This document shows positions 3,905 to 31,230 of a stretch of 64,000 nucleotides of DNA, piece after piece; position 1 is the first letter of the stretch, and every line of letters begins with the position of its first letter. The notes under the pieces were generated by a model. The model saw nothing but the letters and a program-made list of their open reading frames with translations, ran no database searches and was not told the origin of the DNA. Source of the DNA: Takakia lepidozioides (Eukaryota > Plantae > Bryophyta); the NCBI GenBank assembly GCA_030704615.1, contig CM060734.1:61256001-61320000 (forward strand), written 5' to 3'. Both the position numbers and the translations under genes were made by a program.

Positions 3905-4490
3905 GGTAGTTAAGAACATTAAGAGCGTTGAATTTGGAATCAACCAAAATATTTGACATAACCTTAGATAAACCTGAATCAATTGATTAAAATTAAAATA
4001 AGTAAATATTGGTGGTGGACAATTGGAAAGGCAATATATTATATCCTTCATGTGGATGCATTTGCCGACATATCTTTAACCTTTTCATATTGATACAATT
4101 ATGCAAAAGACAAAAACTTACTTGTTGTTTGGGCTGATTTAATAATGTCGATTACGACTATGAAATATTTCAGTGGTTTATGTTTATGTGGTAGTCAAGA
4201 ACATTAAGAACGTTAAAGTTGGAATCCAATTATGTTATTGTATTTGACTTTTCTCACTTCTTTTGTCATCCAACCAAAATATTTGACATAACCTTAGATA
4301 CATTGAATCGATTGATTAAAATTAAAATAAGTAAATATTGGTCGTGGACCATTGGAAATGCAACATATTATATCCTTCATGTGGATGCATTTGCCGACAT
4401 ATCTTTGACCTTTTCATATCGATACAATTATGCAAAAGACAAAAACTTACTTGTTGTTTGGGATGATTACAACTATGGAATATTTCAACT
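3905..4490 (+). repeat. Tandem duplication, two units of about 280-300 bp
   Basis: 3905-4170 and 4190-4490 share long near-identical blocks (caaccaaaatatttgacataaccttagata...gcaaaagacaaaaacttacttgttgtttggg). Confidence 0.9.
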
Positions 4491-4539
4491 CTTGAAACCA
4501 TTATAAGAAATGATCAACCACATGTGATTTAATGTGCAA

Positions 4540-7500
4540 TATTGGGATTTTTGTCAAATTCTTCATCGGATGAACATGGTGGCAGTTGTGGCTATATAAG
4601 CCCCCCTCTTAGGAGTGGCCTTATGTCGATTGTCAATATTATGGTGGACACATGCCAATACAAATGCAGGGATATCCTTGATACTTGTATCTTATTACTC
4701 ATAAGTAAAGAGAGGAGTCCATGAAGTAAGTCTATATCTTTCTTATAAACATACGTATATGTGTACAATTGAGATTGAGAAGTTTTGGGTCTATTTATTC
4801 AGAAGTATTAAGATATGATGTGTGCACAAAATTATGTAAAAGTTATGATTTATATGTATAATCACATTAATGTTGTTTAGCCTACAATGATGCATAATAA
4901 TCTCAAATTGTTATGGTTATCTTACGAAGTGCAGGTGAGGGCAGCAAGTCATTTAAACACGCTTGCCAAATTCTTATATGGAGTGTCGAATGAGGACCAT
5001 ATTTTCTCCACGGTGCTTTATGCAGGCATATCTATGTGCATTACTACTACTAACTTGGCAATGTACAAGTAAGGTATTTGGAGCTAGTGATCAAGATGTT
5101 TTGCAAATTATTGTGGAAACTCTACAAGATGCAGAAGTGTCAAAAAGTGGACCGGCTGCAATATACACAACCTAAGTTACATAAATTCACCAACAAAGGA
5201 TCACTTGCCAACTCGGGGGTATTTTTTGGGTGTTGTACCGGCAAAAGTAATAAGTGCAATATGTACGAGGGTCCATAATGGAAGTACAAAAATTTCAGCC
5301 TCTATCGCTGCATATGATAAAACGGACCTACATACTCTTCAGGTATACATCCATAAACCATTTAGTCTCTCCCATTGTTATACTAAAACACCCATAGTAC
5401 TTATCTCCCAAATTACCAAATGACAAACGGATTACATTAGTTATGGTTTTGTTATGCATCATACTTATATAACAAAAATAATGTATTTCTTCTCATTTAT
5501 GGTGTATATCTTATTCGCATGTAGAGCCCTCAGATTCACATCTTGGATAGTTGATGCATAAGAAAAGATGTTACAGGAGAACTATTGTTTATATAGCTAA
5601 AATGTTCTTTGTATCTAAAGTATGCAAGAATCGTGATAGTTGGAATTGTGAGTGTACAATTGAATTGGTTAGGAATGTACAATTGAATTGCAAAGTTTTT
5701 TTTTTTTTTTTTCTTGTGTACTATCTTAACTCTTGCATTGAATGAAGACTTTAATTTCAAGTTTAAAAAACTTAAAAAGATGCAAATTAATAAGATTTAA
5801 AAGGTCGATTTTTACTTTTTGAATAATGTCAATGAATACAATTTTTTGGTTTGGATAATGTATTTTACAGAATTAATAATCAAAAATTATATCTTTAAAT
5901 AAATATATTTGTAACTGAGCGATGGACTAGAGGGAAGTTCTCCATATTGTTCTTCTACATTTCAGCTACAAACCATAATATTTCATGCAAACTGACATGA
6001 TTTTAGTTTCTTCTATGCACGTGCAGATTATATCTATTAACGGTTGTGGTGCATCAAATGCACCACAAGGAGTGGATATTCTTTTATCGCATGAAGGACA
6101 TATTACTTTTGTATGGTATCTAAATTTTTTAGACACAACAACATGCATCAATCTACATCATATCTAGCAATCATTCTGATCTCTTTTTTATATTTAATCC
6201 ATTTTGTTCTCTCTCTTGAATCCAATCACTCTCCAAACTTATTCTTTGAATACTAGTCTCAATTGTCTCGTTACTTAGAATTTCCTCCAAAGGCTTGTGT
6301 ATTACAATTGAGGATTGAATACCTTTATAATGATAAGGGTCATCTCCTACAAATGTTAACAACTTCTTACATTTGGGAATACTACAACATATTGAAAAAT
6401 TGACTCATCTAAGTAATTACTTCTATTTCGACTTACTCGCTTCAATTTTGATTTAAATAATCACATTGATAATAACAAGCATTTGTGATTGTTTGCGTTT
6501 TTATTTTTTTTGCATTTGTTGACAGGCCGTGAAATGCAACCCATTATATAAACACCTTTGTGGAATATTACAAGTGGATAATACTTCAGCGGTGTGTCCA
6601 TATCCTACATTGAAACATGGTGGTAAGCCGGAAGAATGGATGCACAAGATTGCAGGCGAAATATTTACTGGACCACTTTATGCGTTGTGTGATGCGGATC
6701 CAAACTTTGCTGGTGTAAAATATCAACCAATAATCGATCCTCCACCCCATTGTTGCACCACTGGCGCAGGTGGAGATGGTTGTTTCCCGGTTATGCATCT
6801 TAACAAGTCTCTATTTCAGTTTAAAGCATAGATTAATCTAGAGAATGATGGTTGAACATTTTCATTGTCCAAACTTGATGCTATTACTTGTCGAGTATGT
6901 GCCCAAGACAAGTGGAACGGCAAATGTACAATCCTATAAAAATAAAAATAAGTATAAATATGTATTGCATGTACATAATTTCCTATTTCCTATTTCATTG
7001 TCCCATTTGTTATATATTCAATGTGGTTGCTTACCATTTGATATATGACTTTGATACTCAAACATTAGGATTGTGAGTTATTTCATTTGTGAACTTTCTT
7101 AGTGAATATGCATTGACATGCAAAAAGGCAATAGCTCTTCCGGGTCAAGTGACACCATAATTTACACTTCCTTCGGGAGGCGTGATATGTTACATTATTA
7201 CTATCATGCATTGACGTTGTTTTACAAGAGATGCCCTCATCACTCTTCCAACTGGCATACAAAAGCCGATGTCAGAACTCTCCATTGGAGACAAAGTATG
7301 TTGTGTTACCCAACCATCAACCAATATACTACTCATTAAGATATGTCATTTCAATATGTGAGCTTTGTGATTTGACCAATATAATGTATGTAAACAACAA
7401 TTTTTGTTATACAGATATATGATAAAATTGATATTATAACAAATATTTGATTTCAGGTGGCTGTGATGAATGCGGATGGAGAAATAGCATTTGACGAAGT

Positions 7501-8615
7501 TTATGCGTTTGGTCACAATGATGTTGGTGCCATAAGCTCATTTGTGAAGCTCACTTTGCAACCAACTATCATGAGTGATAATGATTTTTTAGTGAAAACT
7601 CTTGAGCTCGCTCCCCACCATTTGCTCCAGTATCATCAGGTATTTTTTGTGGGGACATTATAATTTTGTTTCAACTATATGTTTATATAAACATATATAA
7701 GATTTGTGTAATCCATACAAACAATGAACTTTTGATGTACTTTTTAATTTGAAAGTACTCTCATTTATATATTTGTTGTGTGGTGTTAGGCATGAATGAT
7801 AACATGACGTACAAACGAGCTTAGAACATACATGTAGGTGACTTGATGTGGATCAATACGAATAAGATCATGACGGGTGAGATTACATTATATTTTTTAT
7901 GGTTTTTAAATTTATGCATATAACAGTGACAAGCTTTAGGGCTATGTGGGCTACTCATCATTCCACTGGCCGGGACCTTGTTGACTATGATTCTACATAA
8001 TTTGATAGAAGTTTCTAGTATATGGTTGATAGTACAAATCTCATGCTTGAAAAGTTGTGAGGTGAATTGACACAAAATAAATTTGTTCGCTTGAAGTTTT
8101 CTTGTTTCCTTAACCATTGACATTTAACAATAATTCAAACATTGAATTGTGGCAGATGCAACGGTGAGTATTAATGTTTGGGTTGTACAACCCTTACACT
8201 CTAAGTGGAAATATTGTCGGAGATGATGTGGTGGCATCTGTGCATAGTGATTGGTTTCTCGATGGTTTATTTGACGCTATCACAATCACACATTGGCTTC
8301 CTACAGCTTATCAGGTATTTCCAAAACGTTACATGTTCAAGTTATTTATTTATTTCATATTCCAGCACTAGGATTTAATATTATCATTAATATTGTGGCT
8401 TTGTTCACATATGACAGATGGTGCTAGCTCCATTGCGGATGCTTTATTATTTCTTGGGCAAAAACACATATGCTAGATTTTATTACTTTGTGGGGTCGTA
8501 TATGGATGTACCTCATTTTCTCACTCTCCATGGCGGCAAATGTGCAACTGTTGGTGGTATGGTTGCTACATTTATATTAGTCTCTCTTCCGATGCGAACG
8601 AACTCAAAATTTTGA
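4540..8615 (+). pseudogene. Multi-exon Hog-domain (Hedgehog/intein Hint + sterol-recognition-like region) gene, decayed; 5' limit uncertain
   Basis: Exon-like pieces: GAGGDGCFP (ending 6789); DALITLPTGIQKPMSELSIGDK (7230-7295, GT donor); VAVMNADGEIAFDEVYAFGHND...LELAPHH (7457-7639); MTYKRA*NIHVGDLMW (7790-7876); GLYNPYTLSGNIVGDDVVASVHSDWFLD...HWLPTAYQ (8156-8314); MVLAPLRMLYYFLG...hydrophobic tail, stop 8615. The motif order matches Hog domains. Lesions: TAG at 7822-7824 and probable frameshifts near 7620 and 8173. Confidence 0.8.
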
Positions 8616-8806
8616 GTGTGGAGTGATGACATAAGTAGGTCAATGGAGAAACAAATGGTTATGTGGTGGCACATAAAATTGCGATGCAGGGTGATATCGA
8701 ACATATATCTATATGTGGCTTTAAAAGTTAAACCTATTACTACTTATGGATGACCTTATGTCCCTGATAACCAAACCATCTATTGGATACTATGTAATAG
8801 TAGGGC

Positions 8807-8936
8807 ATAGGGCCCATCCCCGAAAGGGGGTAGTAGCTGTAAGGCGAAGTGGCTCTTAGTTACGCCGGCTTTGGCCGGAGTCTTCTCTCTGTCTCTCTGT
8901 CTCTCTGTCTCTCTCTCTCTTTGTCTCTGTCTCTCC
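8807..8936 (+). mobile_element. Short retroposed insertion (SINE or 5'-truncated LINE 3' end) with CT-microsatellite tail
   Basis: Flanked by a perfect 12-bp direct repeat TAATAGTAGGGC (8795-8806, 8937-8948); ends in (CTCTCTGT)n/(CT)n. Confidence 0.7.
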
Positions 8937-9404
8937 TAATAGTAGGGCTAATTCTACGATATTGTGAGTCATGACACAACTATGTGTCATCTTGATGTTT
9001 TCATTGCACCAATGATAATCGTAAAATTGGAACATTATATTTGGCTAAAGTGAAGAACATGGTTGAAAAGTGGATAAAGCCATTTTATGGGATTTTAGAA
9101 ATATATTAGAGATTGTGTGTGTGTGTGTGTGTGTGTCTTTCTGCTCAGGTCATTTTGAAAGAGCTGCGATCAAAACCCTCGAGGCTGATATAGTCGTAAA
9201 ACTTGTCCTTGTTGTTGGTTGTGGCTCTTTTCTTGCAAAACACACCTCTGTGGGAGCCCCAACTTCAATCCTTGGCAGCCCTTGCTTTGACACCATTGTT
9301 GGAGTCATGGAAAAGTGTGATTGCAAGATTGTGCCACAGCGGCCTCGACCAATCAGTTGATAGAGCAATCGTAGACTCCATAGTTATTTGAGCTATGTTT
9401 GATT

Positions 9405-9470
9405 GTCAGTGTTTTGGGCACTTGCTTTATAAGTGACCCAACTTCCCAGTACAATTGAAACATGTTTGTT
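9405..9470 (-). mobile_element. Retroelement gag-type zinc-knuckle remnant
   Basis: Minus strand reads TCFNCTGKLGHL*SKCPK, a degenerate CCHC knuckle. Confidence 0.4.
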
Positions 9471-11689
9471 AGACATCGTTTGTAGAGGCTCACCATGCCT
9501 CCCCACATGCGTCTTTTCATTTGATCCTTCAATCGTCGACTTCAGATGGCTCCCAATTGATCCAATCTCGCGGCATAGCTATCCCACTCCTTCCCACTCT
9601 TTTTCACTATCACTATCAAATCTTTGTCTACTTAGTTTTTTTGGTCTTCTAGACAACGACACGTATATGACGTTCACTAACGACAGTAAAGTCTTGGACA
9701 AAACACGATGCATATATGGCTAAGTGTTATTTGCATATGTAACAAAAAGAACATAGACAATGAAGAAAAGTGTTATCTGCAGATGTAATGAAGTTTCCAT
9801 GTAAAGCAACCCATACAAAATGATCTAAATTTGCACTAAATCTACTGGTATGTAAGTTGAGCACCGAGTGCCGATCATCAATCGCATTCAACCCAAAATT
9901 GTCTCCCCTTAGAAATGGCAAAGCCCCAAGTGGGACTTGAACCCACTAACATGCCCAACCACGTGTGGCTTGCATGTGGGGCGAAGATATGGTATGGGAC
10001 AAACTGCAAGTATTATGGCATGTTGCTCAGATAGGCCAGAATAATCCCCCCCCCCCCCCCCCCCCCCCCCCACACACCTTTTGCATGCATATGGATGCAA
10101 TGAAATGCAAGGAAAGAGCAAATGAATGCAATGTAGGTCTACAAAAGCCTCCATATCCTCTGTCGCACACCGACAAGCCCCGCTGCGCGTCGACACGAAG
10201 GAGGAGCTAACATCAAGGGGGCCCGGAGTTCGGCGATGAGGTGGGTTAGGCTCAAGAACCGCCCCCCGTAAGTGTGTCGCTAATCTTGACAGAGGGTCAG
10301 CGGTCGATGGAAGATTTTCTCCCACTATCTAAACTACCGGCAAACGTAGGGTCCAACTCCCACGCTCACGGGGCAAACGTTTGGCAACTTACGAAAAACT
10401 GCTCCTAGCTAATTGCTTTCTATGTCTTTTTATTGAGGTAACACGATTTCACCCTGGAGCCTGTCAGGTTTCTCGGGAGGTCCCCTCTGCTTGGAGCGTC
10501 TACTTCCGGAAAGCTTCTCCAAGATGTTAAGGGCAAGCCACTTAGGTTGGGAATGCTTCACATTCATGCTTCACATGATCGCACGTGTGTGCCGAAGGGC
10601 CATCTATGTTCCCGCTATCCTGAGGGGAGAGCAAACCCTAGCGTAGCAATACCTCTACCCAAAAATATCATATTTTCTCCCTATTTTCTAAGGCCATTTG
10701 CTCATTTAGAAATAGTTTTTAAAATAAAATTAGAAAAAATACTACATAGGTAGGATTTTCTAATATGAAAATAGAAATTTAAATAATACTATTCTTACTT
10801 TCTGGTGAATTTCTAAGCATATAAACCCAAAGTATGCACGACAACATTCAAAAGCTCAGCTGAACGGGCGACGATGGGAACTCCGCAGTTTGCGGAAGGA
10901 GACCCCAACGGTCTCTTCGTCTCTCTCACTGACGTTACTGCTTACTGTCGTCACCATGCGCTTCCTGGATCTCTTCAAAGGACGCAACTCCACAAGGCCT
11001 TGCCTAAGTTGATTGGCCAATCTCTCAATTCCATTATGTTTTCTCAAAAAAAAATCCAATAACCGATTTTTTAATCTGCTTGCGTTTTGGGACGCCCTTC
11101 TAAGTTTCCTTCTCTATCTACACCTCCCTTATCATTCTCCTTTCATCTAATCCATCAATACTGTGTATCACCTCTTCATCCCTGCTCGACATTTCCCTTA
11201 ATGTCACTTTCAGTCAAGTGGCGCTGTCATCCCATCACCTCTTCAACTACCCGTCTTTATAAATGACGGCTGCCAACTTGGTCGCGCGGGTTGCCACCAA
11301 GTAACAACCTCCAAATCCTATAGTCCTCTTCCTCACTTTTACAATTCACTATCATTTCGCTCCGAGTTATCTCTAAGTCTCTACTATTTTTGCATTCATC
11401 GATCCTCTCTTCAGGCGTTCTCACTCTTCCCTAGTTGCTTATTCACAATCTCTAGTTCTGGTCTGCGTTGTTTCCTCTAATTTCTCGTTGTTGTCTTTAA
11501 ACTATCGTTGTAGTTTTAGCTGGCACTAGCTTGTCCTCCCGGGTTCTACAGCTTCCTGATCTACCTCGCTCACTGATCTCTGGCCCTCGCTGAATCGCTC
11601 GCCTTAACTCTCGTCGTCTCTTAGCTCTTCCTACTTCTTAGTCTCCAGTACAGCCTTCAGATTAGTCAAGTGCGCTTGCTCCTCTCAAC

Positions 11690-15496: not shown

Positions 15497-17250
15497 TGCG
15501 ATGGTGAGGAAACATCGACCCGTCTCCCTCGAGGATGGGAAGGCGGTCCCACAGATCGAATGGGGCCCAATTCCAACCGTGTTTCCTGGTCCGTTGCACC
15601 TGATCCAATACAGGCTGGCGGACACAATTGTAGAAGGACCGGGATAAAATTTCAGGTGATGCGGAGGATGTTGACACTCCGGGATCGAGTCGGGCACGCA
15701 ACGGGTTGCCCCCTCGCGGACCACCCAATGGTGAGAGCCCTGCTAGTCCAGAGGCACAACGCCCACGTGCGTCCACCTTTGACCCCCCCCCCCCCCCCCC
15801 GACAGGATTGAGTGTTGGTGCACTAAGTGTTGGGCACGGATACCACCGGGCGGCACCAGACCACCGATGCGTCGATCGCATATTGTCGAAAAACATTACG
15901 TGAGGAACTTGATTGCCGATGTGGCAAAGGTGAGTCTTTTTCCACCCCCTCTCATTAACCTTCATTCATAGTACATTTGGTATATCTAATAATATAGTAT
16001 GATTGGTAAGCATACATGAAACCACATTACGATATAAGTATTGATACGTCATATACTACGCATATTGCAGCCACAACTTGATGCCCAAGCTCGCAATCAC
16101 ATTGCACGGGAGGCATTTCGCGCCGGTCTGCTTGTAAAATTTGTGCCAGAGCCAGTGCCCAATGAGACCAGTTAGTTCCCCCAGCACCATGAGATGTATA
16201 GGGTCGAGGGGTATCATAGGTGTCGCAGGCGTTATGGCCGGCGGCGAGCAAGCCCACCCCCCCCCCTCCGGTTTCCTCAGGCGGTCCCCCTGATGCAGTG
16301 TCCTTATCTGATGATTCTCCCCGCCATACATGCAGTAGCAGCTTGCAGACCGATTGTGCCCCCCCCCCCCCCCCCCCCGTCTGTTTCTTTGCTTGATCCA
16401 CCTCCGGTAGTACCTGGTCCGGACGTTGTACCCCCGGCTGTGCCTCCGACATTACATCCTCAACCACCTCCACTTTCATCTCCTCCGCCAACAGTACTAC
16501 CTCCACCAGTACCACCTCCACGTGCATGTGCCCCCCGAACCCCTATGAGGGGTCGGCTTTGCCCTAGGTTTCCTCCCCTTCGGCTTGGGCGGCCTGAGCC
16601 GGATCCTCGCCCCCGATGGGAAGCGCACAAGACTATGTTACTGAGGACCATCCAGCCTCGTTGCTGGGGGAATCATCTCGACCCTCCTACCCCCATCCGA
16701 GAGAATGTGGAGTTCGAGTATTGGGATAGACAGTATATTATGAGAGCCGCTACTGACCCTGCTATGGGTCGGGATTTATTCACGATCAATGATATTGTGG
16801 TTCCTCCTGGTAGACTTGTTTCCCTACTATGATCCATACTACACCTCCGGGGAGTTCCGTACATTACGCCTCGAAGCCCCATACTCATACCCTACATTTT
16901 GTGTGTCAACGGACATGATGTACGTAGACGGGGGTTATCTCCCATTGAGATCAGATTTTGTGATGGTGACCCCGATATCTTCGGCAATGTTGCTGGGCTC
17001 ATCAACAGTTCTTTTGGTCATCCTAGGAGAACCAATGTAGTATGGGACGAGCGAAGCCATGGGCATGAGAGCTTTTGTGGTCATACGTTGGTATATTGTG
17101 AGGAGATGCACATGTTTGTCATGACATGTGCTAATAGGACTATTAGGGCTAGCAGCGAGCTATTTGCCTCATACGAGTTCTCCCGGGATGATTGGCCCTC
17201 CGATTACAGCATGAGTGGGATGTGTATGACAGTAATAGGGTTCCTTTGAG
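15497..17250 (+). pseudogene. Degenerate proline-rich ORF upstream of the CACTA transposase (possible element-borne accessory gene)
   Basis: Exon-like GC-rich blocks with GT/AG ends, a Cys-containing segment (HCTGGISRRSACKIC) and a Pro-rich ORF at 16194-16832; poly-C slippage frameshifts. Confidence 0.4.
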
Positions 17251-18289
17251 ACAAGGATCGCGTAGATGGGCATTGTAGATATTCTCATGATGTACTTTGT
17301 ATACATCCGATTAATCGATTGATGTAAATATTTTTCTTGTTACTCGTGTGGGTTGCAACTTTGTATATGTGATCTGAATATACCTATGCACATGTGGACC
17401 AAATATGAGCTTGAACCAAGTTCATTCAATGGGTCATTCTAGTACTGAACGCAGCTACGTGTCGTAGAGACGGAAAATTGCGTTTCGCCTGTACATGATA
17501 TATATATATATTTCTATTTCTATTTTCAAGCCATATGCTTATTTCCGTACATTTGGGAGTAAACAAAAGTCACTTGGACCCAGAACCATATTTTGTTCTC
17601 TCATTTGTATTCCAAAGTTGAGTTATCTTCACTCTTTATATAGAGTTATGCAAAAGTGACCCTAGAAATACACTTATTTTTTTTCCTTTTTTTTTGGTCC
17701 AATTTTTTGCATGGATGTAGTGGTGCAAACCCTGATGTTACAGAATAAAATAGAGCCAAAAATAAAATCATTACGCCCCTCAAAACCGCAATTATATATT
17801 TTCTAAATGCAAATATTTATTTTAAATTATTTTAAATTCGATTTAATTCAAAAATTGGTTCAAGGGTGAGTGCGTCGTTGGGGAGGCAAATGTTTTTTTT
17901 TGCTGGATCTTTGCACATGTGTTGCACACATATTTAAGCACATGTGGGAAAAAGTGAAGCTTGAGCCACATCCGTTTGATGGGTGCAATGGCATGAAAGG
18001 ATTTTCTTTCGCATTAAAACTGGTTGATAGGGTGAACGCGTCCTTGGGGGGGGCAAATGATTTTGTTTGGGTTTGAAACTTTGCATGCGTGACGTTGTGC
18101 ACATACATGTAATTATTGAATGATATATTTGATGCATGCACACATTGACGGTTGTTGTTTGCAATGATACATTACAATATAATTATAATGTATGGTTGCA
18201 ATGACATATTATAATATATGCCCATATGTTCATTTTGTTTGTATCAAGACTTTGTCAATCCCTTCTCGGTTCTTTTTTGGGGGACCCCA

Positions 18290-21200
18290 TCCGAAAACAA
18301 CCCAAGTACATTAGGTGGGAGCCGTGGGCGAGACGCCACCCCCACCGGCGATCAAGTACCGAACGATGATGACGATGACAGTGACATTGATAGCAGCAGT
18401 GAGGATGGAATTAACCAGGAGGATGTGCAAGCTATGGAGGATCTCTTAATGCATCATATAGGCGCCGATGCAACCCATGGAGAAGAAACCAGGCCAATCG
18501 CTGATCCTGAAATGGGCCTCTCAAATGACTGGAGAGGGAGGCGAAAACTCCTTTGTACGAAGGGGCGAAAGTGAGTCGACTTTCAACAATCTTACTATTG
18601 CTCAATCTTCAAGTTCGATTTGGCATGAGTGGATGTCTGCCATAATGCGAACTATTGCGGACTATATCCTTGCTCCACACTTGAAACCCAAGATGCCACG
18701 GTCGCGGAAAGAGGCGCGCGAAGTGTTGGACTCTGTGGGGATGGGCTATAAGATTTTTCATGCATATCCATGTGATAAAACCCTATACTACGGAGATGAT
18801 TCGCGTCTCACCAAGTGCCCAAAGTGCAAGGAAGACCGATATCGGGATGATATCCAAGAGAAAAAAATACCATACAAGGTATATTAAGCGTCATTCCCCC
18901 CTCGCATGAAAAATTTTCTTCTTTAATCTTGTCAATGCATGTCAAGTATATTCCACAAAGTTTGGGGTTTAGAGAGTAGTACTCATACAAGATCTGATTG
19001 TGGCTTTGGAATGAGCGAGTAATACTAGCGACGTTCGGTTTTGACCATTCACGCCCAAATGAAGGAGAGGCTGTATAAAGGGAAAGACATAAGGGTGTTG
19101 TATTATGTGTCATAATGGGATGATTATATGTGGGGGACGTGGGACATTTGGCAACACTGATGAGATGACACGCCTCGCATCGGAGCCCCCCGAGATGAGA
19201 GGCATATTGCTTTGGACAATGCATGATTATCCAGGTATATTATGTTCCTCATGAGGAACCCGCGTACGTTTACTTGTGAAGGCGACAGTCTTGTGTACTG
19301 TAGTGGGGTAGATGGCACTATGGGCCATGCACATGAGAACTTCTTGTTTTGGCTAATGTGGCGGGATGTGTACAAGACTAACTATTTGCTCGGAGCTAAG
19401 CACCAAAGGGTACCATGCGTGCTTGCATTGTGGCGATGACTTGATGCACATAGCTCCCGCCATCTTCGCAAGATAGTGTATCCCAACTACCGCAAGTTTC
19501 TTCCTATGAGCCATCGATGGAGAAGAAGAGAGAAACATTTGTTTGATGGCAAAGAGGAGGTACGTCCCCCCCCTGTGACACCATCCGGGTAGTTGTGGGA
19601 AGACCGATGGAAGGAGGCCCATGCGGGCACGGTCGGTGAAGTGGACGTGCCCGACATGAAGCGACTTTCAATCTTCTACGAGTTGCCATATTGGGCGGTA
19701 CGTATTCCATAAAAACATCGTCAATATCCCTATGCATGCATGTGATATTACACATTTGGTATGTGTTGCACTGTCACTTTCACGTCAAAAATTTGTGTAA
19801 GTATTTGTGGGTGAGGATATATGTAGGACCTAAAGATTTGCCATCTTCTAGATCCCATGCATATTGAGAAGAATGTCTGCTTGTCCCTTTTTTGGTTTCT
19901 TCATGGCACGCCGACAAAGAAGGGAGTGGCTGCAAAAGGAGATTCTCTCGGTGTTAGAAAGAAGCTTGAGGAGCAGGGTCGCATGCGCCATCTATGGACC
20001 GAACAAAATGGTGTGGACCCAAATGGTGTTGTACGATGGAAGTATAGGCGCGCACCTTGGCAATGGACAAATAAGGAATACAAGAATGTGATAGCCACCA
20101 TAGGTGTTGTCCGAACACCAACTAGTTATGGGTCATTCCTCCGTATGAAGTTCAGCGAAGACGGGGTCCATGGTTTGAGATCTCATGACTACCACAATAT
20201 TTTGCAAGACATCTTGTCAATTGCAGTATATGGGACATTGACTCCCGAGGTCCGCGAGACAATCTACAAATTGGGAAGCTTGTTTCGGTGGATTTTCTCC
20301 AAAGAGTGGGAGGAAGCGGATTTCCACGCATGAAGAAGGAGGCGGTGGAGGTATGTGTATATTGGAGATGAACCTTCATTCCTCCTCCTTTGACATCCAA
20401 CTGCACATGGTAGTGCACTTAGTGGAAGAGGCTTCGATTGCCGGCCCCGTTCATTCTCGGTGGATGTACTTCCTTGAGCGTTACATAAAGACTTTGAAAG
20501 CATTTGTAAGACAAATGGCGCACCCGGAGGGTAGCATGGCGGAGGGGTATATATTGCAAGAAGCTATGTTCTATTGCATGGAGTACATGGCAAGGATGGA
20601 TGAGGAAACCCCTCGGATGTGGAAGGAAGAGGAGGATGTACGAACCAAAGACATTGTTTTGCCCAAAAAATCGAAGAGGGTAAAATTGCCGACCTTGGTT
20701 ATTGAGCAAGCGCATGACTTCATACTGAAGAACACCCCATCCATATATGAGTGGGAGACAAGATACCATAACCTTGTTCAACTACGAGAGGAGGAGACGC
20801 TTGCATAGAGGCGGAACCATCGAAGGCCAGTTACTAGACGTCGTCGACGAGGAGCGGGCCGTCGGAATGTTCCTTCACAAGATTTGCTCGTGGAATTGCA
20901 GCCTCTAAGTTCATTCCAACAGTCGCTCAAGACTTCAGTTTATGACGTCGTTTCTCAAGGTGAGGTGGTTTCAGATATGGTGCAATATCTTGCAAGGGGC
21001 CCCTCCCAATCCGCGATCTCATACACGGCGGTTTGGGATCACGGTCGTCATTTTCACATTCGTGCTCTTGACATGAAGCGCAAAACAACGTTTGATTCTG
21101 GCTTGTGTGCCATATATTGGCAAGACTCCGTGTGAGATAAGGGAGATACATGACCTGCTATGAGCAAACTTGAGTACATTGGAAAGCTTGAGAGCATATT

Positions 21201-21790
21201 CCAACTTCAATATACAAGGTACCGGCCTCTTCTCTTCAAGGGAAGGTGGTTCCAGCCACATGATCTTGTTGGGCCCTCTGCAACACTAGTGCGAGATGAT
21301 TGTGGTTTTATGCGCGTCAATGCAGATAGACTCAACCATACTCATTGTCCCTCCGATGAGCCTTTTGCATTTCCTTCAGACATGGAGCAAGTTTTCTTCT
21401 CCGATGACAAAACAAGAGGGGGAAATTGGAAGGTGGTTGAGGAAGACGTATCTATCATGGTCTTGGATCTCCACGGGGTGAGGCAATTACGGTGGAGGGA
21501 CAGACTGGTCATAATGATGCTGATGATGGAGGTTGGGTAGAGGGGGTAGAAGAGGACGATGACGCCCCGGAGAATGCATCCCGGACCCTATATGATGATG
21601 ACGCTCCAGAAGATACGGATGTTGGACAAGGAGATGAAGACACGGCCATTGATAACGAGGTTGAGGATGATTCGGAGGTGCCTTTTGAGGGCCGGACCAT
21701 TTATGACAATGACTCCGATGAGCAAGAAGACTTGCAGCTTGATGAGGATGAAGAAGCTCCGGATGATGACGATCGAGTTGATTAGACACG
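18290..21790 (+). mobile_element. EnSpm/CACTA TnpD-like transposase pseudogene (Transposase_21/DUF4218/DUF4216 architecture)
   Basis: Motifs: GMGYKIFHAYPCD..LY..KCPKCKEDRY; LLWTMHDYPG; KRLSIFYELPYW; DPMHIEKNV; GLRSHDYH; FDIQLHMVVHLVEE..GPVHSRWMYFLERY..PEGSMAEGY; DEPFAFPSDMEQVFF..WKVV; acidic tail. Many stops and frameshifts. Confidence 0.93.
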
Positions 21791-22019
21791 TAATCAAAGC
21801 TACATAATAATTCTTGCACCGATTGATTGTACATATACATGCATATTGTAGTTTGTTTCTATGATTCATCAATGGTCTTGCAAGTGAGGGGTTTGGTTCT
21901 TTGCCATGGGACGCCATGGTATGGAAACAAACTCCTTGATGTTGGACGCCACAACTTGGATGTTAGTTTCTACAAAATGGACAAGTTGATGAGGACATCG
22001 ACTCCCTGTTAGTAGGGGT

Positions 22020-22315
22020 GTGTGTCGCGGCCCTTTGTCTTGAGGGCAGGGGGTCGGGACACAAGAGGGGCTGCCCCTGTGGTGGTCCAGTGGCAACAAT
22101 AGGTACGGGGGTTGAAGCACCCTTGAGTGCCTTGGCGGAGGCGCTCACTAGGTGGAGCCCCGCACACCGGGTTGCAGTGTGGGTGGTTCCACGAGGGGTG
22201 GTGGTAGCTTAGTGGGTCTTAGTGGGGGTGGTATAGGACTCACCATGGGGCGGAGACCTTGTGGTGGGAGTCGTGGGGAGTCTTGGGGCCGTGGTAGGTG
22301 GGCCAAGACTCACCG
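22020..22315 (+). repeat. Dispersed repeat homologous to 51390-51650 (likely TE subterminal sequence)
   Basis: gcggccctttgtcttgagggcagggggtcgggacacaagaggggctgcccctgtggt versus gcggccttttgccttgtggccgagggtcaagacacagagggggctgcacttgtggt; shared gtggggagtcttgg...ccaaga.tcacc. Confidence 0.65.
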
Positions 22316-22425
22316 CGACTCATCACCGGGAATGGAGGGTCTTCGTGGTCGTTCGCCATAAAATGACTGCGTTGTTTGTGAAACCCCCTCGAACAGTCAC
22401 AGAAGTATATATAGGGAGTAGTAAC

Positions 22426-23200
22426 CAGTGTTGGCCGGGTATGGCATCTTGACATGCATATCTGGCGGTTATTTGCCGGTTATACATATGTGCATAACCG
22501 GAAAGTGCAGCCCCCGCAGGAACCGGCTATGGAAGGGAACCGGAAAAAAAAATCGAGCTTCCTAATCGGCTAGAGAACCGGCATGGTGATTATAAGGGTG
22601 TTATACCCGGAGCAAGATCCAGAGCAAATGTGGATGGCGTAGAGGCGGTTCTAGATAATACAAGTGTAAGGGTTAGTGATGATAGTTATGAAATTACAAT
22701 GTTGGGGAGATTAGGTGCACAACACTAATGAGAATGTCCAAGTAGGAAGTTCATTAGTTGGGCATTTGGCATTTGGCTAGGACAATAGTTGTAAGTTGTA
22801 AGCTTAGTGTATTAGAGGGGCTGGGCGGAGAGATAGATGACAGGGTTGAACTTGAACTTTGAACCCGAGACCCACAACCAATACTCTAGTGGCTTATCAC
22901 CAGGCCACAACCCTTTTGTGTATAGTTTTACACACATACACAAAAATGCTAGAAAAAATAAAAATAAATAAAAGTGGATGAATCCCATAACCGGTACCAT
23001 GGAACCGGCATTTTTTAAGATGACATAACCGGTAGATTGAGAACCGGACAAAAAAAAATCCATGTGTTTATTGAGAACCTGTAACCGAGATGTTTTTCAA
23101 ACCTATTGGTGTACCCTTCCCCGGCCATCCATTTTTTTCAAAGAGTACGCCATAACCGGGACCGGGAGAGGGCTCAAAACATGGTATCTGGCCAACACTG
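22426..23200. mobile_element. hAT-type MITE
   Basis: TIR CAGTGTTGGCC (11 bp perfect); perfect 8-bp TSD GTAGTAAC (22418-22425, 23201-23208); AACCGG subterminal repeats. Confidence 0.92.
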
Positions 23201-23208
23201 GTAGTAAC

Positions 23209-26200
23209 CCCTATCTGCTGGCAAGGCCTGCTGATATCCACGAACTGCAGACATCGGCAACAACTCAGGGTACTGCTGCATCAATTGAGCAACATGGCGT
23301 AGGGAGACGCGTTGTGCAGTCTCATCCCTCTCCACATATAAGTAACGTCGTACTCGTACACTTGCCTGAAGCACAGTAGCCAATCCGATGCTGATCCCGT
23401 CAAACAAGTCCAGAAGGCAAATGCCTTCATCCGGACACTGCCACATGATCGGTGTGGTGTCCAATGGTGTCAATTGAGGTGGTTCTGGTGCAATCCCCAC
23501 ACTCTCCTCCTCTCCTGACGGTACAAACGCCTCTTCCCAGGCTTGTTGCACCCGTCGATCAGCAACCTGTTGCAAATCTTTGCTCGAGCCCCACAATGGA
23601 GTGTAAGCAACCATGGCAGGCAACTTCGCCATCCCATACATGTCATCCTGCTCTCCCGGAGGTGACACATCCTCTGAATGAGCATTGCTCTCAAGCAACT
23701 CTCCAGGCCAACTCACTACAAATGTGAATGCTGCCACTGTCGGCATCTTGCCTCGCTCGACAACCGCAACTCCTCCTATGAACGTCACGGGGAGTTGCAC
23801 ATGCCGACCTGACTGCCATCCGGGCCCATAGGAAGCTGATTCCTCCCAAAAATCCAGGGTACAACACTGCCCCACCAACCAGGACATCGTACGAGACCGC
23901 GTTTGTCATAATGGCCTTGGCTCTCATCACTGAGCCATCTGTAGGATGATCCGGCTGTAGTCTGATAGCCAACTCATGCCGTGTCATGCCGTGCGCCTGC
24001 TCTGATCCTCCCAGAGATGTCTGTATCTGGAAAGGACACGGCTCCATATCCGCCTCCGTGAGGCCCAAGCCTGCAATAGCAGCTTTGCCTACATCAATGG
24101 CTGAGCTCCCAAGTCCAACAAGACTCGCAGTGGCCGGTATCTCTTGTCTTCCGGTCCACTCAAACAGAACATGCCATCTTGGTTATCTAATATGACAACT
24201 CCAGGTGTCACCATGACGCGCTCAATGGCTGACCTAGCTGGCAGCTCTACCAACCTGACAGCTGCAGCTTGCCATGGCGCCGCCGTGGCAGTCTTGACCC
24301 TCACATCCGAGGACCCCTCCGTCACTACACTGTCCTACTATCTCCGCAGAAGATGAAGTAACCTCCCCACTCTCACAGAGAGTAGCTGCCAGCCTGAATA
24401 CCTCAGCTGGTCTTACCCCCGGCGTCGCAATCATGGTAGCCGAGAACAATGGAGCCTGACACACAAATGTGGCCACCCCCAGCAGCACACCAGCTGTTGT
24501 AGCCTTGGCAGCACTAGGTAGTGGTGCCACTCGTGTAGCTCTCCCCAATGGCATAGTAACCTCCGCCTCGGTAACAATTGCGCGAGAATTAGGTACCATG
24601 GATGGCGTCGACACTGTCTCCACCAATGTAAATGACCGAGGAAGCCTAGCCTGACGATTTGCTTCCACACTCTGTGGTTCCAACTCCACCTTTGCACCTC
24701 GTGGCTCAGGAACTCGTGCTGCTCCTCGAGTCACTACCGCAGCCGATTCCACTTGCACTAGTGGTAGTGCTGTCCCGTACATAGTGGTAGTGGTAGTGGT
24801 GCCCCACCCATAGTGGTAGTAGTGGTGGCACCTCTCACTAATGGTAGTGCTGCCCCGCACATGAATCCCATGCCTCCCATATCTCCTCCCTTAGGAGCAG
24901 GAGGTGGACCATCCGGCCTTGGAGCCGGTACCACCTGAGTTGTGGCGATGGCAGCGAGCCTCTGCTCTAGCTGCTGAAGACGGTTGGCCATGCCTTGGTC
25001 AACACCCTGACCTCCACGTCCATGGCCATGTTGAGTTTGCCCTTGGCCTGCACCTTGTGCCTGGCCACCTCGTCCTCTCTGGGCTGCTCCACCTTGCCCT
25101 CGGCCACCATTGTTCATTTGGAACTGGCCTAGGTGCAACTCATGATGCAAACCATAGCACTGGGCCTCTCCATGCCCGTACTTGCCACAATGCCCACACT
25201 GCAACTGTGCAGGCTGTGCCTATGCCAAACCATTGCCAATCCTTCTTGACATGGGGTCCTCCACATGTCCAGCACACCACATCCGCCCGTTGTTGGCCTG
25301 CAAATGAAGGGAGAGACCCCTGCACCTGAGATCCTCTCTGTCCTTCCCTAGGCTTCACCTGAGCCCCCTTGTTGCCTGGAATACGTTGGGGTAGTGGTTG
25401 GCTAGGAGCACCATTACCCCGTGGTGTCTCCTTAGCAAATCTCACCATGACCATGCGTTCCTCCACCATGTTGAGCTCTATCCGCTCTGCCAGCAAAAAC
25501 ACATTTGTTAAGGTGGGTTGGGCCGTTTGTAGGAGAGTTGCATCCCGTATCATTCTCCTCAGCTCCTTGTCCAATATCCCATACCAGAATTGGACTGCCT
25601 GAGCCTCCGTAACCCCTTGGATTACATTAATCAAGCGCCTCATACGAGTAAAAGCCTCCCTCAAGCTCTCAGTAGGCTTTCTCTGGAACTCTTGCAAGCT
25701 CCTCAACTTCTCTGTCCTCACCCCTTGGTAGTTCCTTCTCAACTCTTCGAAGAACTCCACAACAGGGTTGAAGGCAGGCACGGCCACTGGTGCTGGTGCA
25801 GCAGTAGCTTGGGTGGACGTCGTAGCCTCTATACCACTAGTCCCATTGCTGCTTGTGGAAGCTGCCGGTGTGGCTGCTGCCCTTGTCCCTCTAGTGTCTC
25901 TAGTGATGGAGACATAGTCGGGTGTCCAGTACATCCTCCACTCTTCGATCTCAAACATCGTGCCCCCGCCTAAACTCATGGTAATCGTGGCAGCCCTTCA
26001 AGGTGCTGAAACAGCCTCTTCCATGCCATAAAAGGCGTAAACAGTTGTGGATTGCGCATTTGCTGCAAGTCACACCAACTATCCAACTCGATGGTGCCCA
26101 CAGCCCCAGAGTACCATCGTGGCCCTTTGGTAGCTCCATACATCTCCTCCATTGTGTCCCACAACAATGGCAATGAAACAACTTGCACCGCCGGTGTAAG

Positions 26201-26341
26201 TCCTCCTGATTCCCAATCCGAATCAGAACCTTCCGTAGAAGACACATGAGGTGAAGGTGGCCTAAACCGCACACCTCGTCTCGTGTACCCGCTAATATCG
26301 CTAGTGCTTGTACCGACATTTTCCCCAGCAACTAGTGACAC
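23209..26341 (-). mobile_element. Truncated Ty3/gypsy-like retrotransposon: gag - zinc knuckles - aspartic protease - C5 DNA methyltransferase N-terminus
   Basis: gag: FFEELRRNYQGVRTEKLRSLQEFQRKPTESLREAFTRM. Knuckles: CWTCGGPHVKKD and CGHCGKYGHGEAQC. Protease: RVLLDLGAQPLM...YDVLVG. Then LLDLFDGISIGL...YLYVERD...ALPAD (C5-MTase motif I-III pattern). Frameshifted; RT and integrase absent. Confidence 0.8.
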
Positions 26342-27379
26342 CTCCGTGTTGCCAAACTGACACTCAACCGGTCATGAACCTGTCTCTAACCCCCTCTCCA
26401 CAAGGTATCCGGGGAAAGAACTTGATGCGGCTTATGGTTGGAATACTAGGTTCCTAACATAGCCTGCACCTGCACCTATATCCACCGCAGACACTCCCAT
26501 GGTTTGCTGGTCATTACCTCCAACCTCACCACAAGATAAACAAAGATGGTATGACTGGTCATCAACCCAGCCTCACCATCGACAACATGCTCTAGGGTTG
26601 GATCGGCGATCAGGCCCGAGTCAACCACCTATAAAATCAAGCACCCACACAAAACTAGCATGACGCACAATCAAGCATGTAGGTGTGGAGGGGATCCAAA
26701 CACAAGAATGAAAACAACAACTCCCCCACACCAAAAACAACTCCATAGTGTCGCTTCTGCAAGGACATCCCAGTCCAAACCCGGACTGACTCTTGCCTCC
26801 ACCTACGGAAAGGTCTCGGCCTACAGAGAAGGTTTCCAGCTATGAGGAAAGCAAGCTACAACAATGTCTATCCCCAGCACGCTCTCATCCCAACACCTTT
26901 TTTTTTTTTCCTCTCTTCTCTCACTTGCATGTCCATGGGGAGCATCCTGTAGACACTCCTCAAACCACCCTCCACGAGCTCATGAAACTTGGCCTCCAAG
27001 GCCCCATGCAAGCCTCCACAGGGTCCGCCAGTGCCTCCTTATGTCCACCAGCCATTCCTCATAATGGAACCTCCTCAGGAAACCAAGCCATCCACTGAAG
27101 GTTCAAGAATGGAGCAAATAGAGGTACATATAGGCCCCAACAACATTATGTCCAAAGAAATTACCTACAGGCTGGTCTCCCCCATAGTGAAGAATTGGGC
27201 TGAAAACCCGAAAAGATTACCTGCAGGGAAATAATCCCCTGTGTTAAAACGTAATGGGGAGGCAATTCCGAATTTTCTGCCGGATCAGCTAGCTCAAAAC
27301 CGTTGTTCTTCAGAGCCCAGCCTCCCCATCAAAGTCCCACGAAACGAGTGAAAAAAGTTTTTTTTTTAATTTTTTTTAA

Positions 27380-27720
27380 TAATAAATTTTTAACTCTAAC
27401 TGTTCGCGGCCTTCCGTGGTTCCAACCGCCCCTCACGGCCCGTCCTAGGTGCTCATTGGCCACGGGCTGCCCCGTGATACCCCATGGTACCATGCCCATG
27501 AGCCTTCACGGCCCGCCATCCCCACGATCTGGTCACCGTGCCCACCCGTGGTATCCGCACCACGACTTCCCATGGTCACGGTCAACAGTCACGGTCAACA
27601 GTCACGGCCTGGGCTCGTGGTATTTCGTGATACCGCCCCCATGGCCCATCACAGCGACAATCACGGCCTCGGTCACTATTCCTTGCATTCCCTGGAACTC
27701 CACACGAGTTTCCATGCGTT
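27380..27720. repeat. Cluster of CACGGC/CACGGT short repeats upstream of the retroelement gag (possible LTR/leader)
   Basis: Many cacgg(c/t) and ccatgg motifs, including the tandem gtcacggtcaaca x2. Confidence 0.45.
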
Positions 27721-28694
27721 CTCGGGTGTTCCCACGCGTTCCTGAGCTCTCCCCGAGCTGGGGTTTGCTCCTGCACCTACTGCCTCTGAGCTATGGCTTC
27801 TGCGGAGCCATCAGCCCCGTCGCCCTGCACTCCAGAGCTCTCATGGCCCACTAGAAGCGCCCCCAACTCAACAAGCAAGCTATATGCTGCCCAACAAGCT
27901 CCATTTTCTTCATGAAGCTCACAAAAATAAATCTGAAAATACACACTTTTACAAACCTTGCTGTACCTGCAGTTCTACTGCACATTCCCTAGCTGTATGA
28001 CGCCTAGTTGCTGCCCTTCCAGCCCCACTCTTGCCACTCCAAGAGCCCTTACAGTGCTAGAGTTTCAGATTGAAACTCCCAACTCAAGCACATGCTTCAC
28101 AAGTGCACTGATTTGCACACAAGAGGGACCAGCCCCCTCTCTTCACTCATATCTCTTCATGAGCTTGGAGTTAAAGCTCCCAACAGGCTACAATGCATCC
28201 CTTCGCAACTCCACTATTCGGATGCTCCTCATCTACCCGCAACAACTGATTTCGGGCAGAAATACTTGGATCTGATCATACCATCTCCAATCTGCAACAC
28301 GTTAGCTTCCCACGCGCAGCCCACATTCCTGCAGCTCCTTACCTCGGCTTGCAGTTGAAGAAGACGGCCACAGTTTGCCCACTCGTGGCCAACATTTCGT
28401 CCGCTTCATACTAGAAACCCAAACTTGGTTGCCATAGCGTCGAGCTATGCAATACTAACCGTCTCTCTATCCATTGCAAACCTGCAACCTGTTCGCCTTC
28501 GCACTCTATCCGCTTTGGATAGGCTCATGCATGGATCGATGAGCCCACCGCGATCTGCCGTGAAGATAACCACGCCAGGTGCCCAAACATGTCTTGGCCC
28601 TTGGATTGATACTTGGATCAATCCCAAATATCAATATATAAAAGCTAGCTATTTCCTAGCTAACTTCACAATAGAAGTAAAATAACTTGACATG

Positions 28695-28810
28695 CCATTG
28701 GATACATAGAAGATTGCACTTGGGCTTAGATGGGCCTCAACATAGGAGACACACTTGGATACATAGGGGATTGCACTTGGACTTAGATGACATTGGACAC
28801 TTGGGCCAAC
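28695..28810. repeat. Short tandem repeat, unit about 57 bp
   Basis: ttggatacatag..gattgcacttgg.cttagatg occurs twice. Confidence 0.7.
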
Positions 28811-29169
28811 GGCACATGCTACCCTAATGAGATTTGAACCATATCAGAACTTGTATTCTTTAGATCTAAGTTATGCTGCGGCTTTGAATGAGTTCGTGGC
28901 TAATAAAAAATTAAATTTTTTCTTGGGTCCGACATTTGACTTATGTATGGAATGTACTTGTTTGTGTACATGCTTTGAAATTTTACAATTATTTAAAAAG
29001 CTAATTTAAAATAAGGTCTAATTAACTGTTGCAAAAGAAAATTATAAAAAAATGGTGTTAGGAAAGAAAGGGTTTTACAATATTACCTAAAATTATGGTG
29101 AAAAAAAATGTGAATTCTTAAAAATATAGCCCAAGTACAAGTATACATTTTGTACGTACGTGATATGAA

Positions 29170-31230
29170 AAAAATACATATAGTGACTTCCCGAGGAGAT
29201 GAGGGTGATGAGGGTGATGACACCCTGGAAAACTAAGACGACATAATATCCTTATGGAGGACGTCTTTAGTCATAGCCAGAAAATCGCCACTCATCTCCA
29301 TCCAACAAGCATTAGCTATCTAAACCCGGAGACTTGAACGAGCTCAGGCTGTCCAGCGCATCTCCCAGCTCCATGTCTGAGAACGGGGCAGAGAAGGATA
29401 ACATGTCATCCGAAAAGATGATCGAGGGAAGGAATACTGTGAAGTATAGACTGCTGGGAACATGCTTGAAGCTGGTCAACTGCACTTTTGTTGAAAAGAT
29501 TAGAGAAGTAAGATCAGGCTGCGAAGGAGGTCATTAGAATTGGGCACAACACCATGATTATCAGAAAGAGCAGAAATGGTTGTGGCAGCACTTCTTTGCT
29601 TTGCTTCGAAAAAAAAACATCGGGTCATTTTCTCTCCTTTGGGGGACCAGTTTATACCAGTGTTGGGCGGCTACCCGCCGGGACCCAGGTTAACCGGAAC
29701 CGGACCGGAACCGGGCCCATTCCTAAGAACCTGATCCGGAACCGGAACCTGCCAATGGAGATCGGCGCAGAACCGAACTGGCGGTTCTTACTGGGTGGGA
29801 GAACCGGAGAACCCGGGGCACGGGGATAAAAACAGGTTCAGGTTCTTAAACCCTTGGTGGGGCTTGGCATAACATGGCATAACACTAGAGAGCCGGTGGG
29901 CCCAAGGCAAAAATTCTTTAATGCTCTCAAGCTCTTGAGATCCTGGGTTCAATGCTTGAAGGCCATGAGATTCTGTTCAATGCTTTAGCGCCATGAGATC
30001 TTGGGTTCAATCTCTAGCTCCATGATATCTTGGCTAAGTTCATTAATAAAATGTTTGAAGATGCCAATACTTGCCGGGTAGCTTAATAGTACTTTCAACC
30101 CATAAAATTTTACCCATTTTCTTCTACCAGTTTATTTAGAGTATTTTTGTTTTTTTTTTGTGTTAGTGAAAACTAACAAAATTGTTGGATTTTAGTTCAA
30201 ATATGTGAATACACTGCTATTTTATCTACCGGACTGATAAAATATTTTAAATCTAATTAAATTAAAAAATAAATAAAATAGAACCGGAACCGATTGTTTT
30301 TATCATCAAACTAACCGGTAACCGGAACCGCCCCCATGTTTAAAAGTTGGATCCGGAACCGGACCGGAACCGGCTCAATAAGAAAAAACCGGAACCGGAT
30401 TCGGAACCGTCTCTTGAAATAATTGTGGAACCAGAACCGAAGGTTCCTTCACAAATGCAAGAACCGCCCAACACTGGTTTATACCCGCTTTTTTGCGCAA
30501 ATTATCCTCTTTGGCCCGCAGAAAGGGTCACAGTCCAAATCTGTGAATAATCGGGCAAGATCAGCCAAATTACGTTTGGCCAAGGCATATGAGGACATCA
30601 GCGGGTTATTGAGTCAAACTACACTGCGCAAGGCATTTGAGCAAGGTTTTTTCAGGTCTGTTCTTGTCCCTAGTATAGAACGCTGCTAATCTCTGGGCTA
30701 CTTTCCTTGTGCTTTCAAACTTTCGGATGAACCTCCAAGTCGGAGAAACAAACTAATTGCCCGAAGTTGCCCAAGTGTCCTTGATCTGTTGCAGGAAGGC
30801 TGGGATGTTAAGAAGGGCCGGATTGAGCCTGAAAACACCCTTTCTTTTAGCCTGAGCTCCAGGGAGGGAGAAGGAAATCAAAACATTGGCATTATCAAAT
30901 TTTGGAAGCACAAGGCCTTTAGTCCCAAGCTTACCCCATACTAGAGGTGTAGGGGAACAGTAAAAGCAGTCCAGACGCGCCCATTTTGCTGTCCATTTCG
31001 CATTCATAACCTGTTTTCGCCATAGGAGGAGATAATCTATTTTAACAGTGTAGGCATAGAATACTGCCACCACCACCAGTCAGTAGCCCAATTGGATAGA
31101 GCACTGCCACCTAGTTGATTCTCGACTCCTACTACTTTGTCAAATGTAGCATCATCTTCTTCCCCTTCTTTAGGGCAGATTGTGCACCTCATGGTGAGGT
31201 TCGTACAAAAGAGGTTAGTTTTCCCTCTCA
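29170..31230 (-). mobile_element. LINE ORF2 fragment (endonuclease C-terminus to RT N-terminus), split by the MITE at 29658-30476
   Basis: Minus strand: WARLDCFY...GVFRLNPALL...IKDTW (30753-31076) and APFSDMELGDALDSLSSFKSPGLD (about 29320-29400). Confidence 0.7.
29658..30476. mobile_element. hAT-type MITE
   Basis: TIR CAGTGTTGGGCGG (13 bp perfect); perfect 8-bp TSD GTTTATAC (29650-29657, 30477-30484); dense GAACCG subterminal repeats. Confidence 0.93.

Follow-up and report, generated by a model that had tools for sequence, protein, structure and literature searches.

The question raised by this locus is whether Takakia lepidozioides (Bryophyta) has, or had, a gene for a self-cleaving protein of the Hedgehog-type Hog family. 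An earlier note, made from the letters alone, had read a Hog module hidden across small exons in a stretch of 64,000 nucleotides (nt) of its genome (GenBank assembly GCA_030704615.1, contig CM060734.1, positions 61,256,001 to 61,320,000 of the forward strand), here called the window. We modelled the gene by reading its frames and by mapping relatives onto the DNA. It occupies 4990-8615 of the window in eight exons on the + strand, within an AT-rich stretch (34% G+C), and its parts encode a signal peptide and an N-terminal domain of ~230 amino acids whose last letters are GCFP; a Hedgehog-type Hint domain comes next, and the C-terminal region is helical and has a hydrophobic tail. The window copy is very probably a recently inactivated, intron-bearing duplicate of a green-lineage Hog gene, a unitary-looking pseudogene, and an intact, spliced copy of ~94% identity lies elsewhere in this genome.

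The exons, and the intron at the cleavage site, are as follows:

4990-5342, + strand: exon 1, with the ATG, a signal-peptide-like start and the start of the N-terminal domain (..GYFLGVVPAKV..), from a three-frame reading; tblastn of the relatives P0001 and P0017 matches 5172-5372.
6027-6110, + strand: exon 2, IISINGCGASNAPQGVD.., a part of the N-terminal domain common to lycophyte, fern and green-algal Hog proteins.
6526-6789, + strand: exon 3, an open reading frame of 88 codons, the lineage-specific, Cys/Pro-rich end of the cargo, finishing in GGDG-CFP.
6790-7228, + strand: intron after CFP, with a damaged donor and the acceptor at 7228.
7229-7295, + strand: exon 4, the first Hint strands, a profile match to Pfam Hint positions 17-38; 64-70% identical to P0001 and P0017 by tblastn.
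7457-7639, + strand: exon 5, Hint, VAVMNADGE..YAFGHND..LELAPHH.
7790 to 7876 or 7900, + strand: exon 6, Hint, (G)MNDNMTYKRA, then TAG, then NIHVGDLMWINTNKIMTGEITLYFL, with an inferred end.
8156-8314, + strand: exon 7, Hint, (D/Y)ATVSINV, a frame change, then GLYNPYTLSGNIVGDDVVASVHSDWFLD..THWLPTAYQ (the GLYNPYT.. block).
8418-8615, + strand: exon 8, MVLAPLRMLYYFLGKN.., the conserved helical region after Hint and the hydrophobic tail, with the stop at 8613-8615.

The window gene belongs to the Hedgehog-type Hog family by descent, as follows from a search with exon 5, from collinear profile matches, and from the Pfam matches and modelled structure of its relatives. With exon 5 alone as the query, phmmer found 14 proteins among 1.84 billion protein representatives. 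The best match is KAJ7298589.1 of the lycophyte Diphasiastrum complanatum (460 amino acids, E-value 1.6e-14, 64% identity), and the matches include a ‘Hint domain-containing protein’ of Ceratodon purpureus. A search with KAJ7298589.1 adds two more Diphasiastrum genes, two from the fern Adiantum, and genes of Coccomyxa and Volvox. The four relatives that were scanned match Pfam Hint with E-values of 1e-24 to 1e-28 (85-99 bits) over model positions 8-162 of 213. A profile of 12 green-lineage Hog proteins was also searched against the six-frame translation of the window, cut into 3074 stop-to-stop pieces. It matches only + strand pieces of the window gene, in profile order (E-values 5.6e-28 for exon 7, 3.6e-21 for exon 5, 3.2e-12 for exon 8, 2.2e-8 for exon 1, 1.9e-7 for exon 4 and 1.6e-3 for exon 2). 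The nearest relatives are lycophyte proteins, with 62-65% identity, and 55 of the 58 near-invariant family columns are kept. Homology to proven Hint/Hog members thus extends across the domain, in the phmmer and collinear profile matches and in shared intron positions.

Pfam searches, which like the other similarity searches were run on single exons, gave two collinear matches to Hint (PF01079, cut-off 29.7 bits). Exon 4 matches positions 17-38 (E-value 0.065, 13.3 bits) and exon 7 positions 139-162 (E-value 0.0063, 16.6 bits), both below the cut-off. Nothing else was found by Pfam on single exons, and phmmer of exon 7 alone had no match in the PDB. If the resemblance were a product of chance or low complexity, with no gene present, such low scores and an exon 3 without relatives would be expected. 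An E-value of 1.6e-14 among 1.8 billion proteins, collinear matches on one strand, conserved intron positions and the spliced transcript of a paralogue all speak against this explanation, which we count as refuted and to which we assign a negligible probability.

The fold was assessed on the intact relative P0017, whose Hog part matches the C-terminal domain of Drosophila Hedgehog (HhC; 6TYY) in phmmer with an E-value of 4e-9. An AlphaFold model of its residues 262-527 (mean predicted local distance difference test score 75) has beta strands at residues 12-162 and helices at 169-251, and the part homologous to exon 8 is helical. Its best structural matches by Foldseek are 6TYY and 1AT0 (template modelling (TM) score 0.92 by target, root-mean-square deviation 2.1, 28-29% identity), so the proposed comparison with Drosophila HhC returns a Hint fold for the relative. 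Inteins and bacterial intein-like domains share the Hint fold (TM score 0.77-0.87 by target, 13-17% identity). Unlike them, the window gene has no C-extein and no downstream nucleophile and ends in a hydrophobic tail, and the Hedgehog structures match better.

The intron positions were compared with the annotated, nine-exon locus of Diphasiastrum (L001:8001-13838; MU831954.1). Five sites are shared: after CFP-G (phase 1), after ..GDQ (phase 0), after ..PVSS (phase 1), after ..AVT (phase 1) and after ..AYQ (phase 0). Profile and intron positions therefore agree with the module claimed in the earlier note, in which the CF cleavage site, the TxxH block, the GxYNPxT..AS block and a following helical region are split over small exons. 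The peptides listed there are present in the window, in frames that can be read directly. The exons described exist, and the upstream exons at 4990-5342 and 6027-6110 and two frameshifts had been missed. When the Diphasiastrum locus was compared with the window by blastn, two exons only (74-80%) and no introns aligned, and the Diphasiastrum gene is thus not the close sister copy. The Diphasiastrum intron after ..PVSS (exon 6; L001:10877) is of the GC-AG type and begins GCAAGT, where the window reads GTATTT.

The predicted nucleophile is the Cys codon at 6781-6783, in GGT TGT TTC CCG at 6778-6789, which aligns to the CFPG of all relatives. Where Diphasiastrum has the phase-1 donor CCA G|GTATGCA, the window reads CCG GTTATGCA, and its sole GT lies one base early. 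Combined with the acceptor at 7228, this breaks the frame across 6790-7228. The earlier observation that the splice phases from CFP to DAL do not join is therefore borne out, with a mutated donor as its cause. Another cleavage site, ‘CFTRD’ read from 7218, is preferred by tblastn. It was rejected because these letters are the polypyrimidine tract before the acceptor and follow a TGA at 7212-7214. Furthermore, the Diphasiastrum intron likewise lies after CFP-G, the donor flanks are alike, and the paralogue transcript has the number of letters expected of exon 3 joined to exon 4.

Public reads, all in the form of Logan contigs, provide a close comparison. DNA runs X1 and X3 share a sample, from which the assembly was probably made; runs X5 and X6 are guessed to be RNA. 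An X5 contig of 3150 nt is ~94% identical to the window and aligns on exactly the exons (4986-5339, 6024-6111, 6557-6716, 7216-7295, 7457-7623, 7788-7870, 8178-8311 and 8415-8587). The joints 5339/6024, 7295/7457 and 8311/8415 are GT..AG, and the first of them fits the GT-AG sites 5342|6027 after the cut is moved by three places. Exon 2 has joints at both ends, and exon 3 is covered at 6557-6716 and by 30 further, diverged letters matching 6527-6556. Because the alignment is confined to exons with GT..AG joints, the contig reads as the spliced transcript of a close sister copy. The 7295/7457 junction, which had been called a clean GT-AG intron from the letters, is thus in use in a close paralogue.

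Set against the sister copy and the relatives, the window copy has the following lesions, in addition to the damaged donor at 6790:

5173-5177, + strand: exon 1, a 5-nt insertion, TAAGT, which brings an in-frame TAA and a frame change.
7610-7612, + strand: TxxH block, Ala (GCT) in place of the Ser/Thr of 12 of 12 relatives.
7621-7623, + strand: end of exon 5, one T missing relative to L001, so that the last five codons are out of frame and read ..LLQYHQ in place of ..FVPVSS.
7822-7824, + strand: exon 6, TAG at the conserved Lys of YKRAKD.
7900|7901, + strand: inferred exon 6 donor, where the expected phase-1 donor reads GG and not GT.
8177-8179, + strand: exon 7, an extra T, which leaves ..ATVSINV and GLYNPYT.. 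in different frames.

At these sites, leaving aside the inferred exon 6 donor, the paralogue, taken from the X5 contig or from paralogue-type DNA contigs aligned with it, is intact. It has 5 nt fewer at 5173/5174, which restores the frame, and removal of 5173-5177 from the window likewise joins the signal-peptide frame with its conserved continuation. Across the CFP junction it has 142 letters to the 140 of the window and restores CFP-G-D. The window's G at 7610 is A in the paralogue (ACT, Thr), and its T at 7822 is likewise A (AAG, Lys). The paralogue further has one T more after 7620 and 1 nt fewer at 8177. In the window, exon 5 now ends in a phase that does not match the phase-1 acceptor 7789|7790. 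The peptide ‘HLLQYHQ’ of the earlier note is thus a frame shifted by a 1-nt deletion, and its ‘MFGLYNPY’ hides the 1-nt insertion in an exon that begins at 8156 in another frame. The stop-bearing exon had probably also been ended too early. The coding frame of exon 6 runs beyond 7876, where TGEITLYFL aligns to TTTLFVV of the Ceratodon protein, and the paralogue has 51 letters where the short model of exons 6 and 7 has 28, which fits the longer exon. Exon 6 probably continued to 7900, although a GTGAG at 7877 would allow an in-frame splice at the cost of eight codons. A micro-exon that would use the GTGAGT at 8164 was rejected, since no acceptor follows.

The frame across canonically spliced exons is therefore broken at 5173, 6790, 7621-7623, 7822 and 8177. 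With at least five disabling lesions and the catalytic Thr lost, the window copy cannot make a Hog protein. Neither a working nor a hidden gene is supported, and translation would end at codon 62, at the TAA of the 5-nt insertion. Rescue of the TAG by RNA editing of the plant organellar type was discarded, since the gene is nuclear and has introns, and since the frameshifts would persist. DNA contigs carry both the paralogue variants and the window’s own version. An exact window contig spans 6574-6847, so that the donor lesion is real. X1 contigs without the 5-nt loss at 5173 are present, and the extra T at 8177 is kept in one of three contigs.

Several points weigh against this reading. The frameshifts at 7620 and 8177 fall within runs of T, a context prone to error in long-read assemblies, and no contig with the window’s letters is listed over 7620 or 7822, which leaves the assembly as the sole source for those two lesions. 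The missing contigs may reflect bubble popping in Logan, in which minor paths are dropped, and they are proof neither way. The exon 6 donor lesion is derived from the relatives only. The contigs share a sample with the probable assembly source and are not independent of it, the record labels X5 as RNA by guess, though its spliced joints favour RNA, and transcription of the window copy was judged from contigs rather than raw reads. On these grounds one could suppose a gene that is intact and working, with the breaks due to assembly errors or a wrong exon model. The two frameshifts are indeed homopolymer-length changes, the window version is not shown at 7620 or 7822, and 55 of the 58 conserved residues are kept. 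Against these stand the lost catalytic Thr and a total of at least five disabling lesions, of which the one at the donor is present in an exact contig. We consider an intact gene very improbable.

Alternatively, the broken and intact copies might be haplotypes of a single locus, one a null allele and the other functional. The X1 depth of the exact window contigs (~31) equals that of one variant set (31.7), as would be expected of alleles. However, exons differ from the sister transcript at 70 of 1159 letters (6.0%), and the difference is 6.5-6.9% in two paralogue DNA contigs, of which one lies entirely and the other mostly in intron. This divergence of 6-7%, with several indels in exons and introns, is far above the usual allelic level. 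Moreover, at 6634 and 6654 two variant contigs (depths 31.7 and 54) occur beside the window version, and one sample therefore holds at least three versions. Two haplotypes are thus unlikely, if somewhat less so than an intact gene. A recent duplicate that decays neutrally is in agreement with the near-equal divergence of exons and introns and with the 55 of 58 near-invariant residues, the latter also indicating that the decay is recent. Among the RNA-type contigs, none is at least 95% identical to the window. There is thus no sign of expression of the window copy, though contigs cannot show absence.

The earlier reading is accordingly right about the Hog module, of which an intact, spliced sister copy exists, while the window copy itself is dead. 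The ancestral product would have been a secreted precursor consisting of a signal peptide, a cargo of ~230 amino acids, a Hint domain whose first residue is the Cys of G|CFP, and a conserved helical region ending in a hydrophobic tail. As in Hedgehog, this Cys in intact relatives would attack the peptide bond before it, with the help of (S/T)xxH, and so form a thioester, from which a nucleophile (lipid hydroxyl or water) would release the cargo.

The active site of HhC comprises C1, D46, T69, H72 and C143, and Hedgehog with the D46H substitution still autoprocesses in cells, whereas the C143A and C143D variants do not (PMC12054796). C1, the Ser/Thr and the His of TxxH are conserved across the plant and algal family. 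The window reads A-P-H-H at 7610-7621, as the earlier note had seen, with the His kept (7619-7621) and the Thr/Ser lost. The position of D46 is an invariant His (GH.D) in 12 of 12 plant and algal relatives and in the window, followed in most family members by an Asp two residues on. At the position of C143, the relatives have Thr, Ser, Val or Cys (Thr in P0017) and the window has Val, so that neither D46 nor Cys143 of animal HhC is found in the window. Given the conserved C1, S/T and H, and the contrast between D46H and C143A/D, thioester formation and release by a hydroxyl nucleophile appear plausible for the family, and a C143-type branched intermediate does not. No discussion of a natural ‘D46H’ state in plants was found in the searchable literature.

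A conserved helical stretch of ~90 amino acids and a hydrophobic tail follow the Hint domain and have no match to Pfam Hint positions 162-213. The window reading frame ends in this tail, 65 codons past the Hint domain, and in exon 8 a nearly invariant Asp (..LD..) is replaced by Gly. The earlier note had called this region sterol-recognition-like. A helical region is present at that place, but the relatives match Pfam Hint only over positions 8-162 of 213, and the label therefore reflects position and predicted helicity.

The closest of the known systems is the green-lineage Hog set, namely the Hog proteins pPp, pSm and pSl of Bürglin (2008), KAJ7298589.1, O6H91_09G106900, O6H91_02G101000, and those of Adiantum, Ceratodon (KAG0557672.1), Coccomyxa and Volvox. 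The window shares their domain order and intron positions, the 62-65% identity to the Diphasiastrum proteins over the Hint exons, and the elements FLGVVPA.., ..GC..S..P.GV.., HSDWFLD..HWLP..YQ.VL.P.R.LY and the ..SKF end. It differs in its stop, frameshifts, donor loss and Thr-to-Ala change, and in its own Cys/Pro-rich exon 3 of 88 amino acids. Animal HhC (1AT0, 6TYY) has in common with it the G|CF site with the nucleophile Cys, the xxH of TxxH, the Hint fold (in the model of the relative) and a helical region after Hint, where the sterol recognition region lies. In contrast to animal HhC, it has the invariant His at D46 and Val at C143, lacks a Hedge domain and leaves the sterol recognition region of the Pfam model unmatched. 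The nematode warthog, groundhog and quahog proteins and choanoflagellate hoglet similarly fuse a secreted, lineage-specific N-terminal cargo to Hog, but their cargo is unrelated and they belong to other lineages, a comparison made solely through published description.

The Hog family was already known, from Bürglin (2008) and from lycophyte, fern, moss and green-algal relatives in public databases, where two are labelled as Hint-domain proteins and the rest as hypothetical proteins. Hog genes with a shared upstream region and a signal peptide were reported in Physcomitrella and two Selaginella species, and none in Arabidopsis or other higher plants (Bürglin, 2008; PMC2362128), in agreement with the earlier note. 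A full-text literature search found no later functional work on plant Hog proteins.

Exon 3, the part of the cargo beside the cleavage site, has a history of its own. No homologues were found in the range of 48-154 amino acids, BLASTP detected no similarity to exons 3-4 of P0001, and there was no Atlas match. Its start resembles that of Diphasiastrum exons 3-4 (AV.C......L.C), and beyond the first ~20 residues no similarity is detectable. The 88 codons of the window stand where Diphasiastrum has two exons of 137 codons in total, including a hydrophobic Gly/Ala-rich stretch. Since the transcribed sister copy also has this type of exon 3, the cargo beside the cut site was replaced in the lineage. 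Judged from sequence comparison, the cargo is modular in the green lineage. More tentatively, we speculate that a Hog subfamily specific to this lineage, with a soluble Cys/Pro-rich segment before the cleavage site, may be represented by the intact, transcribed sister copy. Other fusions of Hog are seen to a hevein-type chitin-binding domain (P0011, a Logan contig) and to a Cys-rich Stig1/CPL1-like region (P0004, from the moss Ceratodon).

The remaining observations concern the flanks and introns of the window gene. Near 4593-4605 there is a TATA-like GGCTATATAAGCC. The main ATG may also be preceded by a tiny first exon, ATGAAG|GTAAGT, at ~4722-4733 (both within 4593-4735). An intron in the 5' untranslated region is possible, as the sister transcript extends at least 123 letters before 4986. 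The DNA runs give the stretch 7059-7185, in the intron at 6790-7228, a word depth of 16,000-34,000, versus ~15-630 for other bins. This marks it as a short repeat of very high copy number, possibly like a miniature inverted-repeat transposable element, and a 30-nt core of it occurs only once within the window. An Rfam scan of 4000-10000 gave no match. At the 3' side, the X5 contig leaves the window at 8587 into CT-rich letters, and a second contig continues over 8585-8677. This departure probably arose where the assembly graph was joined at CT repeats, of the kind found in the (CT)n tract at 8860-8930, rather than from a different 3' end.

As a pseudogene, the window copy adds little by itself. 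It does reveal a small, recently duplicated Hog family with gene death in this plant, where, as the reads show, a near-identical copy remains intact and is spliced. Exon 3 illustrates that the cargo segment preceding the cleavage site is exchangeable between members of the family. They range from green algae to ferns, invariably carry His where Hedgehog has its general base, and appear from their sequences not to need C143. If the sister copy does define a subfamily of its own, a folded, secreted domain of ~230 amino acids, and not a greasy peptide, would receive the C-terminal adduct. The protein would then be a plant counterpart of a lipid-tagged secreted signal, and the window copy a recent casualty of turnover in a small family.

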